Positions 532-19,847 of a DNA stretch of 64,000 nt are shown piece by piece. The notes beneath the pieces are model-generated. The model saw nothing but the letters and a program-made list of their open reading frames with translations. It did no database searches and was not told where the DNA came from. The stretch lies in NCBI GenBank assembly GCA_946965045.2, contig OX337237.1, positions 1,116,001 to 1,180,000 of the forward strand, given 5' to 3'. The DNA comes from Epithemia pelagica. Its lineage: Eukaryota; Protista; Bacillariophyta. The translations under genes and the position numbers were made by a program. Each line of letters begins with the position of its first letter. Within the stretch, counting starts at the first letter, position 1.

Positions 532-1250
532 CCCAATAATTCTACTGTTTGCGCTTTGCAGGAGATCGTCGTTTTCAGAATGAAACATAAAAAGAAAGAG
601 TATATTGCTTCCGGTCTTCGAGAGAGAAAGAGAAGATGGAGTGCTTGTAACTTGTAACCAAGGAAGTCAATCGTATAGGAACAAGCGTTGTTTCTTGTTA
701 TTCTACTGACTGCGAGTGCTCCGGGTTCCGGAGAGTGGGATAATCGTGATCGTGCGAACAACCTCGCTCGGTCGCGGTGGTGGTGACGACCCATGAGCGA
801 TTCAAAGGCTTGCATCCACGACTCCGTCCCAGATTCCAGAGGTTGGATCTGCATCAATCTCTAGCGTCCGAACACTGCAAAAATTCACAGGTTGTCATCC
901 AAGAATCTTGCAGTGGCGCTTCGTATTGATACCAGTTGTCGTTTCTCATTGGATTGCACCACCATGTCTGGATTCCATCTTTTCCATTTGATCTTTTCTC
1001 TGGGGGTGGTTGATGGCCACAACAGAAGAGCGTTCTATTGCGTGTTGATCTCTCCATTGCAATTTGTAAAAGAGTTGGTGATTCCATTCAGTGGCAGCAC
1101 ACCACCACCAAGTCTCTGATTGAAAGAGTGTTGTTCTTGTGTTGGATTCAAAAAGATTTTTGGGTGCAAAACCGAATAGTGTCTCGCCCAAAAGTTCCCC
1201 CTCGTGGAAAGGAATCAATCCATTCATTCTCATTGTGGACAATCAACAGG

Positions 1251-3353
1251 ATGGTGGTCCTTGTCTTGAGACTTTCGGTCTTGTTTGTGTGGCTGTTTCA
1301 TGCGGGGAATGCATTGCGCAATGTCAAGGTTGCCAACACCCAAGAAGCCATTGCATCTCCAAAGGAGAAAACTCCAAGGACTGGACCAACCACGGCAACA
1401 ACAACTTTTTCGTCGGAATCCGACTCTACCTTCTTTTTGTCTTCGGAAACATGTCCCTTGCACTGTTTGAATGGATCCACCTGCCGTCGCGTCAAACGCG
1501 TTGCTAGTGAAGAAGAAGTGCAAAGGGAGGAGTGGCAGTGGCACTGTGAGTGTGTTGCTGGATTTCAAGGAACAGAGTGTGGCGATACCTCTACTAGTGC
1601 ATCCATCAATGGTCTGGACTCTTTATTTCCACAACCACAAGAAGCACAAGAAGAAACACAACGGCGCATCAATGCGGCTTCCTCGACAAACACATCCCCC
1701 GCCAAGAAACTGGGACAAGCCATGACCTTGACCAATGTGATTGGATATACGATGGAATCGGATGCGGTCAAGGTCGCCATGGCGGGTCCGTATTTGGTGA
1801 TTGGCGAACGACGTATGGGCAATGGATTGGCGCAAGTGCATTATCGGAAACCCAATGCCACAACCGCCTTTTCCTTGGTTTCCACCATTACAGCCTTGGA
1901 GGGGACGCGCAATTTTGGCGATGCCGTGGATATCGAAGTGCATCCCACCACGGGTCAGCCGGCACTGGTCGTGGGTGCCTCTCGGACCATGCATGAAACC
2001 ATGCCTCAAGTCATTGCTGGATCCGTCCATTACATGACCACCACCACCATGGACCAATCGGACGACAAGAATGACGACGACAACCATGGCCAGACGAGAT
2101 GGACCGAATTGGGTGGACCCATTCGCAATCGTGACGATACGACCCAAGAACATCACATTGTAGCCGAAACGGGTGGTAGGTTTGGAGCAGCTGTGGCCTT
2201 GGCCTCTTCCCAACGTCGCATGGTGGTGGGTGCACCGGCCAGTGGAGTCTTGAATGCCGGCAAGGTCTTTACCTACCATTACTACTCTACCAAAAGCAAC
2301 AACAACAAGAAACCGGTAGAGTCCGAGGCCACTTTGGAACAACAACCACAACCGACCGAACCGACATGGGTACCCATGACACAACCCTTGGTGGGAGAGG
2401 GGGGTGCCAATACCCGCATGGGGACATCGGTCGACATGAATGAGGAGGGTACCAAATTGTTGGTGGGAGCACCCGGTGCCAATGCAGGAGCCGGACAAGT
2501 CTTGTACTATGAATGGGAACCCACCACGGCCACGTGGATTCAAACCTTTACGGTATCGGGAACCAATACACAAGGATTGGGATCGGCCGTTCAATTCATT
2601 CAACGCGATGGATCGCAATTTATCGTGGGAGGTCCCGTCGATAAGGGTGGCATCGTCCAAGTGTACCGACGAAAACCACCACCCAAAACGACACCCTCCG
2701 AGACGGACACGAGACTGGGGGGTACCACCAACTCGGCTACAGCCACTACCAAGACCGCTCCGGGAGTCCTCTTTACACAAATGGGCAACACGATTGAAGG
2801 GACGACACCCGGAGAACAAGTTGGTTCCACCGTCTGTGGCAAACAAGGACGAATTGCCTTTGGAACCGCCTTGGGATCCTTTCATGTCTACGATTACAAT
2901 CCTGCAAGTCGGCAATGGGAGGCGGTGGCCGACAATATACCGGTCCGCACTGGATCGGAAGGAGCCGTGGTCTCGATTGCCATGTCGGACAATGGACAAA
3001 CAGTCAGTGTCGGATTGGAATGGAATCAACAAGTCCGCGTCTATGACTTGCTCCCCACCGATACTTCTACTACCAACGACGGCAGCGGCGACCCAGCCTT
3101 GACGGCACAAGAAGGGGGGACAGGCAATGTCACGGTCCAACAACCACCTCCACCCACGCAACGACCAACCACAGAGGAATTCGAACCAGACGACTATTGG
3201 CCATCGGCATCGCCCAGCGAAAAAGAATCCTTTCCCACACTGGATATCTTTGCCGAAGAAGTACCTCCTCCCAAGGGCAGTTTTGTCGTTCTCATTGTCA
3301 TGTTGGTATTGGCGGTTCTGGTATTTATCTGTTTGGCCTGTGGTTGGTGTTAG
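1251..3353 (+). CDS. Type I membrane protein: signal peptide, EGF-like domain, FG-GAP (integrin-alpha-like) beta-propeller, C-terminal TM
   Basis: Likely start ATG 1251 (MVVLVLRLSVLFVWLFHAGNA). EGF: CPLHCLNGSTC...WHCECVAGFQGTEC. FG-GAP blades: FGDAVDI..LVVGA, RFGAAVALASSQRRMVVGAP, MGTSVDMNEEGTKLLVGAP, LGSAVQF..FIVGGP. TM: FVVLIVMLVLAVLVFICLAC. Confidence 0.85.
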   Translation: MVVLVLRLSVLFVWLFHAGNALRNVKVANTQEAIASPKEKTPRTGPTTATTTFSSESDSTFFLSSETCPLHCLNGSTCRRVKRVASEEEVQREEWQWHCECVAGFQGTECGDTSTSASINGLDSLFPQPQEAQEETQRRINAASSTNTSPAKKLGQAMTLTNVIGYTMESDAVKVAMAGPYLVIGERRMGNGLAQVHYRKPNATTAFSLVSTITALEGTRNFGDAVDIEVHPTTGQPALVVGASRTMHETMPQVIAGSVHYMTTTTMDQSDDKNDDDNHGQTRWTELGGPIRNRDDTTQEHHIVAETGGRFGAAVALASSQRRMVVGAPASGVLNAGKVFTYHYYSTKSNNNKKPVESEATLEQQPQPTEPTWVPMTQPLVGEGGANTRMGTSVDMNEEGTKLLVGAPGANAGAGQVLYYEWEPTTATWIQTFTVSGTNTQGLGSAVQFIQRDGSQFIVGGPVDKGGIVQVYRRKPPPKTTPSETDTRLGGTTNSATATTKTAPGVLFTQMGNTIEGTTPGEQVGSTVCGKQGRIAFGTALGSFHVYDYNPASRQWEAVADNIPVRTGSEGAVVSIAMSDNGQTVSVGLEWNQQVRVYDLLPTDTSTTNDGSGDPALTAQEGGTGNVTVQQPPPPTQRPTTEEFEPDDYWPSASPSEKESFPTLDIFAEEVPPPKGSFVVLIVMLVLAVLVFICLACGWC

Positions 3354-12193: not shown

Positions 12194-13597
12194 ATGAGCG
12201 GTGGCAATCACGACATGAATGCCTTTGAATGGTTGGCGGGTGGGTTGTTTTTTGCCAATTCCAATGCCCCACAAACCTCGTCGTCTTCGCATCGCCATAA
12301 GCGAGAATTGCAAGCTATTGAACATTCCAAAGATGTCAAACAATTGTGGACCGGTGTGCAAGACAATTTTGTACAATTGGAACAACAGCAGCAGCTGCTG
12401 CAAGAACAAGAGAGACAGCAGCAAGAAACCACTCCAGATGCCGTTCCACCCGACACATCGACGGACTCGTTGAGTACAGTCACTGACTTTTTGGCCGCTC
12501 GTGTGACACGGTTGCGCTATTTGTTGTTTGAAGAACGCAAACTCACATCGTCGTCCAATTTTCGATTGTCTTCAACACCGTCTGTAGCCCTGGCCACTGT
12601 CCAGTTCTTTGTGCGTCCATATCAACAACAACAAGAACCTGCACAATTGTGGCCACAATGGATTTGTCCTCAAATCTTTCAACATGTTCCCTTTGAAACA
12701 CGCAAAACCTTGGTGCATTTGTTCTGTTACTTGTTGGTATCGGGGTTGGATGGACCCGATGCTGCCTTGTATCGTGACAATGTCATGTCTGTCTTTGTTC
12801 AACAAGTCGTCTTGAGCCAGTTTCCTGCCATCATAACACAAGTGCTGGCCGGTTATGCCTCGAAATTTTCGCCCGATATTGCCCTCCATTGTGGATCCCT
12901 CTATCGTACCTTGTTGCGTCATGGCAGTTTGTATCAACAATTAGTGGGTACCACGGAGTCTGTGACACTATTTGTCTTTCCCTTTTTGGATACGTTGGTC
13001 CATACACCTAATTTTGATGTTGCGAGTGATGCAATGGAATGTTTGCGATTGGTCCTGGCACCCAGCAGCAGTCAGGCATCACCCGGTGCGTCACAATCTC
13101 AACCACAACAAGCTCCACCACAGCAACAACAAGAAGAGTCTCTCCTTTCTCAACAAAGGAACGAATGGGCGGCTGAATTCATGACGCGAGATTATGAAGC
13201 TTTGTGGGACGATCGATTTGTTCCCCATTTGTTATTTGCCAATGAACATCCCAACAATTACATGACCAAACGTGGTGCCCTGCAAATCTTGGCCAGTGTT
13301 TTGTTGACTCGGACCAATTATACAGTCATGGTTCGCTTTGTTGCGTCGGCTCGCAATCTCAAAGTCATTTTACTCTTGTTGCGACACACATCGCCCCATA
13401 TTACCCTGGATGCCTTTCATGTGTTCAAGGTGTTTGTCGCCAATCCGCACAAACCACCCGAAGTGATCAAAATTCTCAAGGACAATCAAGTCAAACTCTG
13501 TGCCTATCTCAAAACCTTGCATGCCGATAAGGCCCAATCCGATGCACAATTTCGAGATGAAAAGGCCTTGATCATTGCCACCATTGAAGCATTATAG
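12194..13597 (+). CDS. CAB39: MO25 / calcium-binding protein 39-like scaffold
   Basis: Signature C-terminal region NYMTKRGALQIL..LL.RTNY.VMVRFV...NLKVILLLL...DAFHVFKVFVANPHKP...QFRDEK; also FDVASDA. Confidence 0.92.
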   Translation: MSGGNHDMNAFEWLAGGLFFANSNAPQTSSSSHRHKRELQAIEHSKDVKQLWTGVQDNFVQLEQQQQLLQEQERQQQETTPDAVPPDTSTDSLSTVTDFLAARVTRLRYLLFEERKLTSSSNFRLSSTPSVALATVQFFVRPYQQQQEPAQLWPQWICPQIFQHVPFETRKTLVHLFCYLLVSGLDGPDAALYRDNVMSVFVQQVVLSQFPAIITQVLAGYASKFSPDIALHCGSLYRTLLRHGSLYQQLVGTTESVTLFVFPFLDTLVHTPNFDVASDAMECLRLVLAPSSSQASPGASQSQPQQAPPQQQQEESLLSQQRNEWAAEFMTRDYEALWDDRFVPHLLFANEHPNNYMTKRGALQILASVLLTRTNYTVMVRFVASARNLKVILLLLRHTSPHITLDAFHVFKVFVANPHKPPEVIKILKDNQVKLCAYLKTLHADKAQSDAQFRDEKALIIATIEAL

Positions 13598-14148
13598 TTG
13601 AAGAAATGAGAAGTCGGAGAATGCAAACAATGTACTGCGATCGGCCTTGTCGAGTCTCACGCACTCTACGAAACACACTAAACGATATTCCATGTCATGA
13701 AAGATGTAGAAACGTCTCACATAATAGAGAGTCCCCATTTTCTTTAGAAGATGTCGACACACTATAAAAGGACGTAAAACGGAGACAGACAGCGAAACGA
13801 CATCACGCGCGCACAAGACGGGGACCATATGGTGGCGTTTATGAGATAGATACAAGAAGAAAGTGGACTCCAAAGTCTTTTGATTGACAGTCTCGTCATA
13901 ATTTAACTCGTTATGAATCTAGAGTCTTAATGGAATGAGGAGCGCATCTTCATAGTGAGAGTGAAGCGACATTCACGGTTGTGACAAGATAACTCATTCT
14001 GATCGACATGGCACCAACGGTAGATAAGAGGTTTGCAATTCGCAACAACATTCACGTCCTCCTTGTACCTCGCCTTTTTGCTCGCACGTTTTATTTTTTG
14101 CAGCCAACATTCCATAGAAACGGTGCTGTGTTTCAAGCAGCGCCTGAC

Positions 14149-17100
14149 TCATCGTCCTTCAACTAGGTCAAAAATTCGCACTTGTTGATTCCGGAACCCA
14201 GCGGCAACCGAAGCTTTGTCATCCGACAATGCAATGGATACGACCCTGGATGTGGTTCCGGTAGATGTGGCCGTGGTTTCGACGGGTACCCAGTTCATGC
14301 CATCAAAATCAAAGACATAAAAGCTGCCGAGCGCGGTTCCAATGGCGAGACGACCTCCCTTGCCGCTAAGGGTAGTTCCAATACGCTCCCCCGTCGCTCC
14401 CACAATGTCGTTTCCAATCTGTCCAATTTCATTGCTTCCTGCGGCATGACCATAAACGCGTACAATACCTTGACTCACGTTGTATCCTGGACCTCCTACA
14501 GCAAACTTGAACGTACCATCAGGTTCATCCTCAATAATGACGGTAGTTGTTCCAAACAACTCCGTATCGAGGCCGTCCGAAGCAGCACGGAGATCCCAAG
14601 AATTAGAATCCCAAACGTAGTATTCCATCCGCCCACCATTGCCATTGACACCAGGAGATCCTACTACCATTTCTTCTCCATTGGCACTCAGATCAAGACC
14701 TTCGCCCATGAAGCTCAAGTGTGTTCCAAACATACGTTCCGTGACTTCTTGCCAGTCAGAGTCAATGTAATCATACGTGGATACTCCTCCAGTATCCTTT
14801 AGTGTCTCGTTCACACTTGTGTCGGGTGCTCCGATGACAACGCGTCGGCGAGTCGAGGCAACGGCCACGGACTTGCCAAATTCGCCTGCTGCTTCAACGA
14901 CAGCTTCTTCTGTGCGGAAAACACTCCCAATCTGGTTCCATCCTCCCAACCCGTCAGACTCATAGTAGTATGCAGTTCCAAAAGAGACTGAAAGCGTTCC
15001 AAGGGAAGTAATCCCTCGAGTTTGTGGTGCTCCAACCAGCAAAGCAATGGTATCATTTTCTGCGCGTACAGCCATGTCGATAGCAGCGCCATACGATTCT
15101 GATTCATCGGCGCTGTCCGATAACAAACCTTCAACGGTAACATCCAGTGCGTTTGCCGAGCGCTCGTAAGGTTGTGCGGCTCCCAGCCCTGACAATCTCG
15201 GTAGTCCAGCGACAATGGTATCTCTCACCCATGAAATGGCTGCTCCATGCCTTGTGGTGGTTGGAGAACTAAATGTCAAAGGACCAGAACTGGCTGATCG
15301 CCATTCGCGCGTTATTCCGGAGGTCGGAGATTGTGTTGGAGCGGGTACGGGTGATGGAGTGGGAAGAGGCTGGGAGGTTCGACGGTCGGATTCTTCTTCG
15401 TAGACACTAACCAAATCTTCGGATGCATAGCCTACCAACACAGTGTAGACAGAATCAGAAGAGACGTCTACGGCGGTGATGACGGCTGTTGTTGTGTCGT
15501 TGGAAACCTCAAAGCGTTGAAACGATTGGTCCCCAATAATGTCGTATCGAATGATCTTCCCTGAGGCCGTCGCAACTACAAGCTCAGGTCCGTTCGGTCC
15601 AGCTCCTCCTCCAAGAGTCTTTGGCGTCCCTACCCGTTCACCGGGGCCTCCATCAATCTGCCTCAACTGAGTCCACGTGTTGTCGCCCTCCTGTCGTTCG
15701 AACACAAGAACAAGCCCATTTCCGTCACTTGCCGAAGGTGCACCAACCGCCACAAAATCAGAAGAAAGAAACACGACATCGGCACCCAAGTCTACTGCAG
15801 ATGCTAATGTTGTTGAATGAACAACAGACCAGTCATTGTCAATCCATTCAAAGATCCGAAAGCTGCTTGTCCCAGGCTCACCCGCCACAATGGTATTGCC
15901 ATCTCGGCTCATGTCCACAGCACTACCAAAAAGGGCGTTCGCCTGCGTCCCCACCAACTCTGTGGACGATAATATTGTCCAATTCGAGTCCAATAGTCTT
16001 CGGCTATCCGCGACATCAAAATCAAAAGTATAAACTCTGCCGTTGTTATTGGAGTACGCAGGTGCACCAATGACGATGCGATAATTGTCACTCAAACCAA
16101 CTGAGGATCCAAACTTTTCTCCAACGCTGTCTCCGACGATTTCACTTCCTTCCATTTCCCATATAGAAGTTTCGGTATTGTAGACGTAAAAGTATGCTGC
16201 ACCAGTACTGTCTCCTGATGTATTGGCACCGGGAGCTCCAATGAGGAGAAAAGGACCACCCTGTGAGCTTGCCGAACTGAATACAATATCTGCACCAAAT
16301 TCACCCGCTGATGGAGGAGCATCTATGGTCTGACTCTCTTCGTAGGTTACCATTTCTCCGCTTCTCCTTCTCAGTGCTACTGCTCCCATGTCGCCCTCTG
16401 TTGGCATTCCAATGGCAATCCAGCTACCAGCCGTCGCAACACTAGAACCATGTGCTGACATTACCGGCCCTGGAACGACTTGTCGAAGTATCATCGCAAT
16501 CGTTGATAGAACCTGAAAAAGTGAAAAATTGAGTTAGTTTCCTCGCACAGGTAGTTCAAAGAGTAGAATATGAAGGAACTTACCTGCAAAGTTGGAGCAA
16601 GAGTTGGTGCAGGGGTCGGGGAAGGCCCCGGATTATCATCATCGTCATCAGCAAGCAACCATACAATAACAACCACAAGGATTGCGATGAGTAGAATGGC
16701 AATGAATGCCGCAAGGAGTACCAACGCACAAAGAAGACAGCGTCGACGTTCCTTGGCATCCTCGTCTTCGATATTTTGTATCCTTGCCTGTTCCTGAGCG
16801 GTCACACTCTTCATGCCTTGGGCACCGTTGCTATCATCATTTGAATCAACTATAACTACGCCTCGGGTTTGTCTTTGCTGCTCATTTGCTTCATAAGTTT
16901 CTGTCGCTTGATATTCCCCCCTCGTTTCATCATACTCCGTTTGATGAGCCTCTGTTTCATCGTGAAATACTTCGATTTGATCTTCTTCATCCCCGTACGT
17001 AGGTGCATCGATTTCATCTTGTCCAGTTCGGTAAGCTTCATCATCTTCGTACATCCCTGGCGTACCACGAACTCTATAGTCATCGAGATAACTCTCGTCG

Positions 17101-18734
17101 GGTTCCTCGACCTCGCCATCATGAGCCTGGTCATTCAGGACCTCTTCTTGAGGATGATCTTGATCTCCATCTTCTTCATCTCTGAACTCCTCTTGCTGGT
17201 CACCCTCCTCATCTTCCTTATCCGGTAATTCGCTTTGGTCTTCAGAATTTCCACCTTCTTCATCTGGTAGTTCTTGTTGATCTAACTCTGCATCTTGCTG
17301 GTCGGATGCCGAACCAGGACCTTCTCCGTGCTCAGGCTCTGACTCTGACACACCAGGTTCTCCCTGTTCGGACTGTTCATTTCCTGGCTGTGCGCTACTA
17401 TCATCCACCGGATTGTCATCAGATCCGTAGCTTATACTTTCAGGCAAAGTGCGGTTCGGCCGTTGGCTGTTATTCCCCATCAGAGGAGTATCATCGTCTT
17501 CATTGACAAAAACTCCTTCAACGTCGTAGCCTGTGTCATGTACCCAGTCTGTATCGTCACGGCTCTCCACATCTTCTTCACCAACATGCTCCCTTGGTTT
17601 GTTTTCCCGTTGCCGCTCGAGCTCATCTCCCTCGTCGCTGTCATCGCCGAGTATGTCGAATACATCTCCACCTTTTCCTCCGCCTACATTTTGCTGAGCT
17701 TCGCTCTCCTCGTCCTTTCCTGCTTCTCCATCTTGGGAAGTTTCTGCACTCTTTCCTTCACTTTCTCCTTCTTGTTCTTCCACTGAATGCTGTCCTTCCA
17801 CAGCTGATTGTTCTTCAGCTTCTTGCTCTTCAACGGAAGCTTGTCCTTCTACAGCTGATTGCTCTTCAGCAGTTTCTTGGGTCTCGCCGTCTACTGCTTC
17901 ACCTTCTGTATTCTCCTGACCCTCACCCGCGTCCTCAGCCCCCTCCTCCACAACTTCGACGACCTCTACCACTTCAGTGCTATTCTCATCACCATCTACA
18001 GCCGCGGGGTCCTCCTCCACTGAAGTTCCCTCGACATCGGGGGGCTCGGATTCGGCATCCTCAGCCGTTTGTTGTTGTTGTTCCTCGGCGCGTTCGGCTT
18101 CAATAATTCTGGCTTCAGCCAAAACTGCCGCCTTTAAGTGCTCTTCAATATCAGCCTCTTCCATCTTGCCAACAACTTCTTCTTCGGATTGACCAGCGCG
18201 GAGCATTTTCATATACTTCTTGGCAATGAATGCTTCGTGCTCCAGTAATTCAATGGTTTCCTCTTCTTCCTCCTCTTCCTGTTCCTCGACCTCCACCACC
18301 TCTACCACTTCCTCATCTTCCACGACCTCAATCTCCTCTATTTCCTCCACTTCTTCCTCGACAACCTCAACCTCTTCAACTTCTTCCACCTCTTCGACTT
18401 CTTCGACTACCTCTTCGACCTCGACCTCCACCTCGACAACTTCTTCTTCTTCCTTTTTCTCTGGTGCTGGTGGTGTTGGTTCACTCGGTGGTTTGAAACC
18501 TTGTTGCGGAGGGACTGGGTGTGGAAAGTTTGACTTGGGAATGGTTGGCTGTGGAACATCAATTTCTATATCCTCCGCAAACACAGCCGCTCGTACATGC
18601 TCCCCAAGAGATCCCGCCATTCGACTTTCCACTTCCTCCTTGGAAAGACCATTCTTGAGCATTTTCTTGAATCGGTTCGCAATGACCTTTTCATACTCTG
18701 TCATTTCGGGCAAATCATCTTCCTCGCCTTCCAT
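14149..18734 (-). CDS. Type II membrane protein, about 1,504 aa: cytosolic acidic region with two CCDC53-like repeats, TM, PT stalk, two FG-GAP propellers; 2 exons (18734-16584, 16512-14149)
   Basis: Track ORFs 16491..18734 and 14149..16494 join through a 71-nt phase-0 intron (CAG|GTAAGT...ACTAAC...TTTTTCAG|GTT), giving PTLQ|VLSTIAMILR. TM RRRCLLCALVLLAAFIAILLIAILVVVIVWLLA. Blades include FGADIV..LLIGAP, FGSSVGLSDNYRIVIGAP, FGSAVDMSRDGNTIVAG, FGKSVAVASTRRRVVIGAP. Confidence 0.85.
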
Positions 18735-19847
18735 GATGATTGTGGTATCAATTTATCGATGAATCCTTGGCAACAAACGATCTTTGGTTGAAACACAAAC
18801 ACACTAATAAATGGAAGCGTGATGAAAGGAAGCCTTGAATGCACCTTGCGAGGAAAAACAGACGAGCAATTCGTTGCTTATGGTATTCTCCTGCTATCTT
18901 TCGTGGCCTCTTTGTTGTCGCCCTGTCGAATTGAATGCAATAATGGAGATGATGGCCTGCGCCGAGACCGTCTCGTCTAGAGAAATTTGTTCATGTCTTG
19001 GATTGCCCCATACACTGTTTTCTCAACGTTCTTGACAACGTAGAGATTTTCAGTTTGGATTCGACAAATTTGTGGAAACGACGCAAAAAGCACAATTTCG
19101 AGCGGTTTATTTCATTTTGATACAATATAAAGAAGTGTATAATAGATGGTGATCGACGATAAAGTGTGCTCTTCTCCGAGGACTCTCTCGATTCAGGGAA
19201 AATTTTATGTTGGGAAGTTTTTGGCTATCCGTCGGTCGCAGAACATTTCCCAAGACCAAAAATGAGACTCCTAAGTAGTGTAAATTTGGCCACAGAGTAC
19301 TAGGAGTGAAAGTACTCCCCAATCCCCCCCAATCCCCCATTGCCTGTTGAAATCATCAAGCCCAACACGAATTCGGAAAAGAATCCATTTAGGCTTATAT
19401 CTGTCTATAAGAACTATGTCCGCGGAACCGAGATATCTGGTAGAGAGTCATAGTCGAGCTGGGCAATCGGACCATGCTCACAAAATCTAGCGCCGACCGT
19501 AGTTAGTTCGGCTTCTCTCGGATGCTTTCCTCCTTCAATTGCGATACGCAAACTGATACAAATGACAAAATGAGATGACTCTAAGAGAAGTTTATGAGAA
19601 GACGCCATTGGGACAAGGAATTATGCGAAATAGCGGCAAGTTCTACGATCGCTCGTCGGTACCAGAACTTTCCTCAGAGAAAATGACGAATCCTGTTTGG
19701 ACAGACTGCAATAGACCAACTGAATCGATGCTGTTATTTCTCATTTCCCCCTCCCTCTGACGATGATGCGGAGGCATCATTGACTTGATTGATGTGAGAT
19801 GTTACTTTACTTTCACTGTCTGGTTACAATTGTCGACGCTTTGCTCG

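Follow-up and report, generated by a model that had tools for sequence, protein, structure and literature searches.

To our knowledge, no membrane protein joining the outside of the cell to actin has been identified in diatoms, and a locus of Epithemia pelagica raises the question of whether it encodes such a link. The window, a stretch of 64,000 nt of contig OX337237.1, carries a gene that an initial annotation described as a reverse-topology, integrin-like receptor, in which cytosolic repeats resembling CCDC53/WASHC3 of the WASH complex are joined to two extracellular FG-GAP propellers, and proposed as a single-chain coupler of diatom adhesion and gliding. Our analysis partly supports that interpretation.

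A spliced gene for a single-pass membrane protein

The two-exon gene on the minus strand is a real, spliced diatom gene, and its product is a single-pass membrane protein (Table 1). As the initial annotation had proposed, splicing joins two minus-strand ORFs (16491-18734 and 14149-16494). A contig of 5,867 nt from run X2 lacks exactly the 71 intron bases, with GT..AG ends on the strand of the gene, and exon 1 ends at a codon boundary, so the reading frame is kept through the junction. Run X2 itself looks like an RNA assembly because its longest contig measures 19.6 kb. The predicted product of ~1,504 aa comprises two N-terminal motifs, an acidic disordered tail, a transmembrane helix and two FG-GAP propellers. 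The whole architecture lies within one continuous ORF in an MMETSP transcript of the raphid diatom Entomoneis paludosa (P0003), the one named orthologue, and likewise in P0004, which is found on single-gene 4.1-kb contigs from two runs. A syntenic orthologue, L001, is divided into ORFs in the same way and likewise lies next to Mo25; it has kept just one motif copy.

The fusion could be a gene-model artefact that merges the gene of an acidic membrane protein with a neighbouring gene whose product would be a secreted double propeller; in public data, the orthologue is divided into two products by prokaryote-style gene calls, and the contigs of runs X1, X3 and X4, three of the four runs, retain the 71 intron bases. 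We regard this explanation as scarcely credible. The exact GT-AG deletion and the in-frame junction speak against it, the second ORF lacks its own signal peptide, and P0003, P0004 and P0187 are continuous ORFs; the explanation was dropped on the strength of the spliced X2 contig and the continuous ORF in relatives.

The N-in orientation of the initial annotation also held up. Four K/R residues lie in the 15 residues before the helix (aa 667-694) and none in the 15 after it, with RRRC at the flank, and the acidic N-terminus has no signal sequence; exon 1 as a whole contains 231 D+E against 44 K+R. A cytosolic location of the N-terminal part is expected from the motif family that it shares with formins. 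Judged from these sequence features, the protein is probably type II (N-in, C-out).

Table 1. Features of the two-exon gene, in window coordinates
Feature	Position	Strand	Remarks
Whole coding region, two-exon gene	14149..18734	(-)	~1,504 codons + stop
Exon 1: predicted cytosolic tail, transmembrane helix, Pro/Thr-rich stalk	16584..18734	(-)	717 codons
Motif copy 1, CCDC53-C / formin-array type	18573..18701	(-)	aa 12-54
Motif copy 2, CCDC53-C / formin-array type	18114..18242	(-)	aa 165-207
Acidic low-complexity linker	16749..18113	(-)	contains a patch (17490-17549) common to the L001 orthologue
Juxtamembrane RRRC	16737..16748	(-)	RRRC or RRRW in orthologues
Transmembrane helix	16653..16736	(-)	aa 667-694; Kyte-Doolittle 3.6
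GT-AG intron	16513..16583	(-)	71 nt; reads GTAAGT...TTTTTCAG
Exon 2	14149..16512	(-)	787 codons, in frame with exon 1
Propeller 1, seven FG-GAP-type blades	15391..16512	(-)	alignment, Pfam, AlphaFold2
Pro/Ser/Thr-rich linker between propellers	15319..15390	(-)	
Propeller 2, seven FG-GAP-type blades	14152..15318	(-)	paralogue of propeller 1

Tandem propellers in a small diatom family

Both propellers named in the initial annotation are confidently folded FG-GAP domains. Propeller 1 matches FG-GAP_2 (PF14312) with 40.5 bits, above the cut-off of 23; propeller 2 alone falls below this cut-off, yet it is homologous to propeller 1. AlphaFold2 models of propellers 1 and 2 reached pLDDT values of 92.5 and 92.0 with a pTM of 0.92, and the best solved matches of both in Foldseek were integrin-alpha heads (E 4e-17 and 3e-16, TM ~0.72). 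The ectodomain contains no cysteines, and six N-x-S/T sites are present in the protein.

The metazoan integrin alpha head, as the best structural match, has the seven-bladed FG-GAP beta-propeller in common with this protein, and integrin alpha shares with it the single membrane pass and the link from matrix to cytoskeleton that is proposed here. Unlike the type I integrin alpha, the diatom protein is predicted to be N-in, has no signal peptide and places its helix before the propellers; it carries two propellers in tandem, with an identity to integrin alpha of only 15-18%, and a 660-aa acidic tail instead of a short GFFKR-type tail. A Pfam search of the gene found no thigh or calf Ig-like legs, and propeller 2 reaches the stop codon, leaving no room for them. 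The six-frame genome search for integrin beta (PF00362), run without a eukaryote positive control, gave no match. The integrin calcium loop D-x-D-x-D-G-x-x-D is absent from both propellers, where the nearest loops, DMSRDGNTI and DLSANGEEM, miss the last acidic position.

Beyond the diatom family, the relatives closest in sequence are bacterial surface proteins with the same repeat type, FG-GAP_2 (PF14312). They score no higher than 225 bits, compared with more than 600 bits for the ~10 clusters that make up this small gene family, and they bear other accessory domains and lack a eukaryote-type cytosolic tail. No named model diatom protein was among the matches listed in a search limited by word sharing and length. 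P0005 was rejected as independent support: it stems from the same genome or one very close to it, its upstream ORF having the same helix as the paralogue L003. Within the genome, only one of at least 10 paralogues has the N-terminal motif. Members of a sister orthogroup (P0008, P0187) carry in the same N-terminal place a MYND-like cysteine-rich segment, a putative zinc finger read by eye, for which Pfam gave no match in P0008; no Pfam domain was recognised in the cytosolic tail of P0008 or in those of five paralogues.

In plant class I formins and the apicomplexan adhesins TRAP/MIC2, a chain that crosses the membrane once connects a wall or substrate ligand with actin assembly or with actomyosin, and TRAP-family tails are acidic. 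Both are type I, with a direct actin link through FH2 in plants and a link via a connector protein in apicomplexans; they have no sequence relationship to the present protein, so the likeness is an analogy only. Stramenopile membrane proteins with FG-GAP ectodomains occur in Pirsonia and brown algae (PMC13524835; 10.1101/2024.02.19.579948); compared by description, these proteins have EGF or integrin-alpha domains alongside FG-GAP, and a CCDC53-type tail is unreported for them.

The N-terminal motif and its place beside formin FH2 domains

Two copies of a helical motif lie at aa 12-54 and aa 165-207, where the initial annotation had placed them, and are 45% identical to each other. A profile of 699 repeats of the PF10152/CCDC53-C type, built without the window sequence, matches both copies at 24.2 and 26.3 bits (E 1e-9 and 2e-10 with one protein as the search space), which bears out the suggested kinship with stramenopile formin repeats. 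The claimed kinship with the C-terminal part of CCDC53/WASHC3 stands through this family profile and through the orthologues, with PF10152 matches of 35.5 bits in P0003 (model 110-144) and 34.9 bits in P0004 (model 67-146) against a gathering cut-off of 24.6 bits; it fails as a direct Pfam match on the window protein, since PF10152 matched neither exon 1 nor either motif piece, even at E<=10. Both window copies have Ser at a position that is Pro in at least 90% of the repeats, and they may therefore be degenerate. Searches of solved structures with each copy and with a 47-row motif profile gave no meaningful match containing the motif, the best being a designed helical repeat (E 0.007). Neither this architecture nor the motif arrays are described in the literature covered, which was searched for CCDC53/DUF2360/PF10152 in connection with formins or diatoms and for FG-GAP in diatom gliding.

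The WASH reading of the motif is nominal. The orthologues' motifs match WASHC3/CCDC53 (PF10152) above the gathering cut-off at model positions ~67-147, with homology to roughly the last 50 positions of the model, whereas the window's own copies lie below Pfam detection; unlike in WASHC3/CCDC53, the N-terminal part of the model, the coiled coil through which the WASH complex is built, is unmatched in the genome, where all PF10152 matches are confined to model positions 49-147. Strumpellin, ARPC2 and profilin were absent from six-frame searches of the genome. The working WASH-complex link of the initial annotation was dropped because the N-terminal part was never matched and strumpellin and ARPC2 were not found.

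The motif has a fixed place in formins. FH1 is what would normally occupy the position before FH2 in these proteins. All four FH2 (formin) genes of the genome instead carry a tandem motif array directly upstream of FH2, and in 87 of 87 sampled FH2 proteins every repeat precedes FH2, with a median gap of 17 aa that is devoid of a polyproline run. Formin arrays comprise 3-9 copies with a period of ~63 aa and abut FH2, whereas the two copies in the present protein, although of the same motif family, stand ~150 aa apart on a membrane anchor; Pfam found no FH2 in this gene, and none of the genome's four FH2 loci is at this position. The motif profile retrieved 933 cluster representatives at E<=0.001, and all 37 that were sampled match PF10152, 16 of them with FH2. 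An araphid diatom, Thalassionema nitzschioides, has the motif-FH2 architecture too. Other contexts include TPR arrays (P0157), FYVE, large proteins with no other domain, and P0103, in which the motif is N-terminal to a single helix with an LRR ectodomain.

Co-folding of motif copy 2 with actin from the same genome gave a score of 0.41, compared with 0.01 for the best of three controls; the runs share at least 93% of contacts, with a partner pLDDT of at least 79. In calibration, 51 of 78 solved complexes attained the co-fold mark, as did 2 of 108 mismatched pairs, and scores of 0.60 or less comprised 5 of the 78 solved complexes and all four mismatches that passed (of 180). The model thus weakly supports binding of the motif to actin, at a level where the calibration makes such a call more often wrong than right unless a strong prior stands behind it. 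A link of the receptor to the actin machinery is plausible from the motif's fixed place beside the formin FH2 together with this co-fold.

Candidate roles and their meaning for diatom actin

On balance, we favor the reading of a type II double-propeller membrane protein of a small diatom family, whose motif would recruit the partner of the formin arrays and thereby tie an outside or luminal ligand to actin assembly. Pro/Ser/Thr-rich stalks connect the tandem propellers with one another and with the membrane. The propellers would be exposed either outside the cell or in the lumen of a secretory compartment and presumably bind a matrix or wall component. On the other side, the 660-aa cytosolic tail would act as an acidic disordered tether holding the two ~45-aa helical motifs at its far end. 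The partner recruited by the motif, presumably the same as in formin arrays, would most likely be an actin monomer or an actin-associated factor, in which case the protein would connect the places where actin assembles with a ligand outside the cell or in the lumen.

A bolder version, which we think unlikely, makes the ~45-aa CCDC53-C motif a profilin-independent recruiter of actin monomers that replaces FH1 in diatom formins; on its acidic tether, the receptor would then couple an integrin-alpha-like ectodomain directly to actin assembly and could be the missing gliding link in raphids. Such a receptor would constitute an integrin-like bridge between the outside and actin, put together from unrelated components and with the reverse orientation in the membrane. 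Diatoms lack profilins and Arp2/3 (PMC11420354), and the failure to find profilin in this genome is in line with that report. The opposite possibility, to which we also assign a low probability, is that the protein is a surface receptor or adhesin in which the motif serves as a general helical docking or self-association module, unrelated to actin and also used in formins. The presence of the motif with TPR arrays, FYVE, an LRR ectodomain and large domain-less proteins suits this possibility, as do the weak actin co-fold and a function undescribed in the literature searched. However, the rigid position directly before FH2 in 87/87 formins, the lack of both polyproline and profilin and the regular ~63-aa period are hard to explain if the motif has no role in FH2-driven actin assembly.

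Where the protein would act in the cell divides two further explanations. As the transmembrane coupler of a raphid adhesion-motility complex, it would hold adhesive strands in the raphe with its propellers while its tail is pulled along raphe actin. Apicomplexan gliding adhesins have acidic tails, which the very acidic tail of this protein recalls, and its sole named orthologue comes from the raphid Entomoneis paludosa. The prevailing model requires a molecular continuum across the plasma membrane, and the molecular mechanism is described as still unknown (PMC11420354); the architecture of the candidate is compatible with such a role. This role is nonetheless very improbable: the family is small, with no named model raphid protein among the matches listed, the motif is confined to one of at least 10 paralogues and goes with formins rather than myosins, and its pairing with FH2 extends to the araphid Thalassionema. 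Such a narrow distribution argues against a universal or general raphid coupler. A membrane protein of the cell wall or silica deposition vesicle, with its propellers facing the lumen or wall matrix and its tail connected to the frustule-patterning cortical cytoskeleton, is improbable to a lesser degree. The silica-associated proteome reported for Thalassiosira pseudonana includes three FG-GAP proteins, TpSSP14, 24 and 34 (10.1101/2021.09.18.460806), which are set beside this family by domain type; the cytoskeleton is reported to be intimately associated with forming silica (PMC3000822), and 'outside' and 'lumen' are topologically equal. Against this stand the lack of named Thalassiosira proteins among the matches listed and of any known silica-targeting sequence feature among those testable.

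Diatoms use actin to move, to adhere and to pattern their walls, yet they reportedly do so without profilin and Arp2/3 (PMC11420354). The gene provides a concrete, taggable candidate for a membrane link from the outside to actin in diatoms, and it raises the wider question of what the motif arrays that replace FH1 in diatom formins bind. If these arrays do bind actin, they would represent a new way to feed a formin and a first function for the Pfam 'CCDC53' C-terminal motif.

Gene structure and orthologues

The two long open reading frames on the minus strand are joined by splicing into one protein, as the initial annotation had proposed. The exon-intron junctions between them read CAG|GTAAGT ... 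TTTTTCAG|GTT, and intron removal leaves 717 whole codons in exon 1 followed by 787 codons in exon 2 with the frame kept. When public contigs were aligned to window positions 14100-18800, a 5,867-nt contig of sequencing run X2 omitted exactly 71 bases, the cut being placeable at GT..AG on the gene's strand, and contigs of runs X1, X3 and X4 retained the intron. The longest contigs of X1 and X3 exceed 440 kb, but that of X2 measures 19.6 kb; with run types not on record, X2 therefore resembles an assembly of RNA, and the other runs resemble DNA.

Relatives, for which exons 1 and 2 served as separate queries, lend the one-gene model independent support. The N-terminal motif, the helix and both propellers lie in a single uninterrupted frame in P0003, a transcript from MMETSP that belongs to Entomoneis paludosa, a raphid diatom, and in P0004, the sole gene on 4.1-kb contigs from two runs. 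At L001, the orthologue locus nearest in sequence (50% identity), two frames likewise abut, with a Mo25 gene as convergent neighbour as in the window. The X2 contig passes from the receptor gene into the Mo25-like gene, and the 3' ends of the two genes therefore probably overlap or abut. The X1, X2 and X3 contigs part from the window at position 18780, which is 46 nt before the start codon, and share one other sequence beyond it; an allelic difference, an indel or splicing in the 5' UTR may explain this.

Features of the receptor gene, its neighbours and motif arrays in the Epithemia pelagica genome, and the Mo25-like gene at the orthologue locus L001 of another species
Feature	Location	Strand	Remarks
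Long ORF a	window 16491-18734	minus	open reading frame
Long ORF b	window 14149-16494	minus	open reading frame
Intron	window 16583-16513 (71 nt)	minus	GT..AG ends; contig deletion
Motif copy 1	aa 12-54, exon 1		45% identical to copy 2
Motif copy 2	aa 165-207, exon 1		45% identical to copy 1
Mo25-like gene	window 12194-13597	plus	tail to tail with receptor gene
Mo25-like gene, orthologue locus L001	9926-11989	minus	tail to tail with receptor gene
Diverged FG-GAP gene	window 1014-3350	plus	FG-GAP_2 26 bits; matches propeller 2 alone, weakly
Formin (FH2) gene with array	C7:2930048-2931787		motif repeats before FH2
Formin (FH2) gene with array	C7:734482-736719		motif repeats before FH2
Formin (FH2) gene with array	C4:2130054-2131500		motif repeats before FH2
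Formin (FH2) gene with array	C2:5037329-5038939		motif repeats before FH2
Fifth array, six repeats	C2:3675391-3676527		1,840-aa open frame without FH2

Propellers and membrane topology

Exon 2 matches Pfam FG-GAP_2; with the exon halved, propeller 1 alone scores 40.5 bits (cut-off 23), each half contains seven repeats of the FG-x-S-V ... V-G-A-P type (alignment A3), and propeller 2 is a diverged copy of propeller 1. AlphaFold2 models, each built from a 20-row alignment, reached pLDDT 92.5 (propeller 1) and 92.0 (propeller 2) with pTM 0.92 for both. Foldseek against the PDB ranked integrin-alpha heads first for both (top matches 4irz_A, E 4e-17, and 9p96_A, E 3e-16; TM ~0.72, identity 15-18%). 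These results bear out the annotated pair of FG-GAP propellers of the integrin-alpha-head kind, whose modelled fold is that of the integrin-alpha head. Both propellers share this head fold with integrin alpha, whereas the topology is reversed, two propellers are present without leg domains, and the canonical calcium loop is absent; the protein thus has the fold of integrin alpha and none of its other defining features. An integrin-beta gene was not found in the genome. The ectodomain has zero cysteines and six N-x-S/T sites, and stalks rich in Pro/Ser/Thr lie after the helix and between the two propellers.

The sole strong hydrophobic stretch is aa 667-694. Four K/R, including the conserved RRRC, occupy the 15 preceding residues and none the following 15, the first five of which are Asp; the N-terminus is acidic and lacks a signal sequence. 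Orthologues keep RRRC or RRRW ahead of the helix and acidic residues behind it. In a sister orthogroup (P0008, P0187 and locus L024), a MYND-like cysteine-rich segment replaces the motif at the cytosolic N-terminus, followed in P0008 and P0187 (the latter a complete MMETSP ORF) by a KRRR-flanked helix and two propellers. Read by eye, this segment is a putative zinc finger; Pfam (E<=0.01) gave no match on the P0008 tail containing it. Zinc fingers are cytosolic. Because of the charge bias, the conserved RRRC/RRRW and the putative cytosolic finger of the sister orthogroup, the N-in, C-out orientation proposed earlier from the positive-inside rule is a well-supported prediction, and "out" may equally be the cell exterior or the lumen of a secretory compartment.

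The cytosolic motif and formin arrays

Neither window motif copy matches Pfam CCDC53 (PF10152), even at E 10. Copies in P0003 and P0004 score 35.5 and 34.9 bits (gathering cut-off 24.6) over model positions 110-144 and 67-146 of 147, and a profile of 699 repeats, seeded with P0003 and P0004 only and containing no window sequence, scores 24.2 bits at aa 12-41 and 26.3 bits at aa 165-205 of exon 1. The N-terminal repeats were therefore rightly recognized as the CCDC53 C-terminal pattern. Both window copies have Ser at a site occupied by Pro in at least 90% of repeats and appear somewhat degenerate; L001 retains a single copy. At E<=0.001 a six-copy motif profile retrieved 933 cluster representatives, of which 136 reached E<=1e-30; the majority of the 933 contain 3-12 copies, and PF10152 matched all 37 representatives sampled.

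The proposed connection to actin machinery through WASH did not hold. Six-frame searches of the 60.5-Mb genome, by a method that recovers FH2, actin and PF10152 there, found no strumpellin, ARPC2 or profilin, and all PF10152 matches are confined to the C-terminal part of the model; a WASH association of the motif in this genome was rejected.

In all four FH2 loci of the genome a motif array directly precedes FH2 within the gene, and the six-repeat frame without FH2 resembles the large motif-only proteins P0021-P0024. FH2 occurs in 87 of 155 sampled motif proteins, and in every one all repeats, with a period of ~63 aa, lie N-terminal of FH2, at a median of 17 residues from the last repeat. None of the 87 has a polyproline run in that interval, and just four have five consecutive prolines anywhere. 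The array thus sits in the FH1 position in formins of organisms without profilin and may be an FH1 substitute; on this basis, the motif would recruit either monomeric actin or a carrier of actin. A literature search returned no description of motif arrays in place of FH1.

The co-fold of motif copy 2 and an actin from this genome scored 0.41, against 0.01 for the best of three controls, with contact agreement of at least 93% between runs and partner pLDDT of at least 79. The mark was attained by 51/78 solved complexes and 2/108 mismatched pairs; scores <=0.60 characterize 5/78 solved complexes, yet all four passing mismatches (of 180), and by this calibration a pass at such a score is more probably false than true if the guess was not already likely. 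The co-fold is weak support for motif-actin binding and raises its likelihood slightly. Four tandem intronless actin genes with identical match scores lie at C10:2050991-2061243, on the contig that holds the window and at a distance of ~0.9 Mb from it.

Family spread and possible function

The genome encodes at least ten double-propeller paralogues, in clusters located on contigs 3 and 11. In most of them a single helix lies in an ORF or segment upstream, and they therefore share the type II layout; no Pfam family matches their varied tails, and the motif is present only in the window gene. The diverged FG-GAP gene of the window has, unlike the receptor gene, a type I-like layout, its strong hydrophobic helix being C-terminal, at aa 757-775 of the open frame. 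P0103 bears a plant-type LRR ectodomain and a single transmembrane helix together with an acidic linker and three copies of the motif; at least twice, therefore, the motif has come to lie at the cytosolic end of a receptor-like protein with one membrane span.

Among the matches listed in an ectodomain profile search of a large protein collection, about ten clusters exceed 600 bits, and the next are bacterial FG-GAP_2 proteins, which score <=225 bits; named model diatoms are missing from these matches, in a search dependent on word sharing, a capped number of candidates and a length window. This narrow spread of the double-propeller family argues against the protein as the transmembrane link in diatom gliding, which we consider very improbable. 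FG-GAP proteins are present in a diatom silica-associated proteome, which makes a wall or silica-vesicle role a serious rival, if an unlikely one, and a motif role independent of actin is fairly unlikely.

The best-supported account, and one we consider reasonably probable, is a receptor- or adhesin-like membrane protein that would link a ligand to actin assembly, with topology, ligand, partner and cellular site all inferred. Two integrin-alpha-like propellers would face either the cell exterior or a lumen, and a long acidic tether would extend into the cytosol with a formin-type docking motif at its tip. The motif-tipped tether would then connect the propeller ligand with the actin assembly system.
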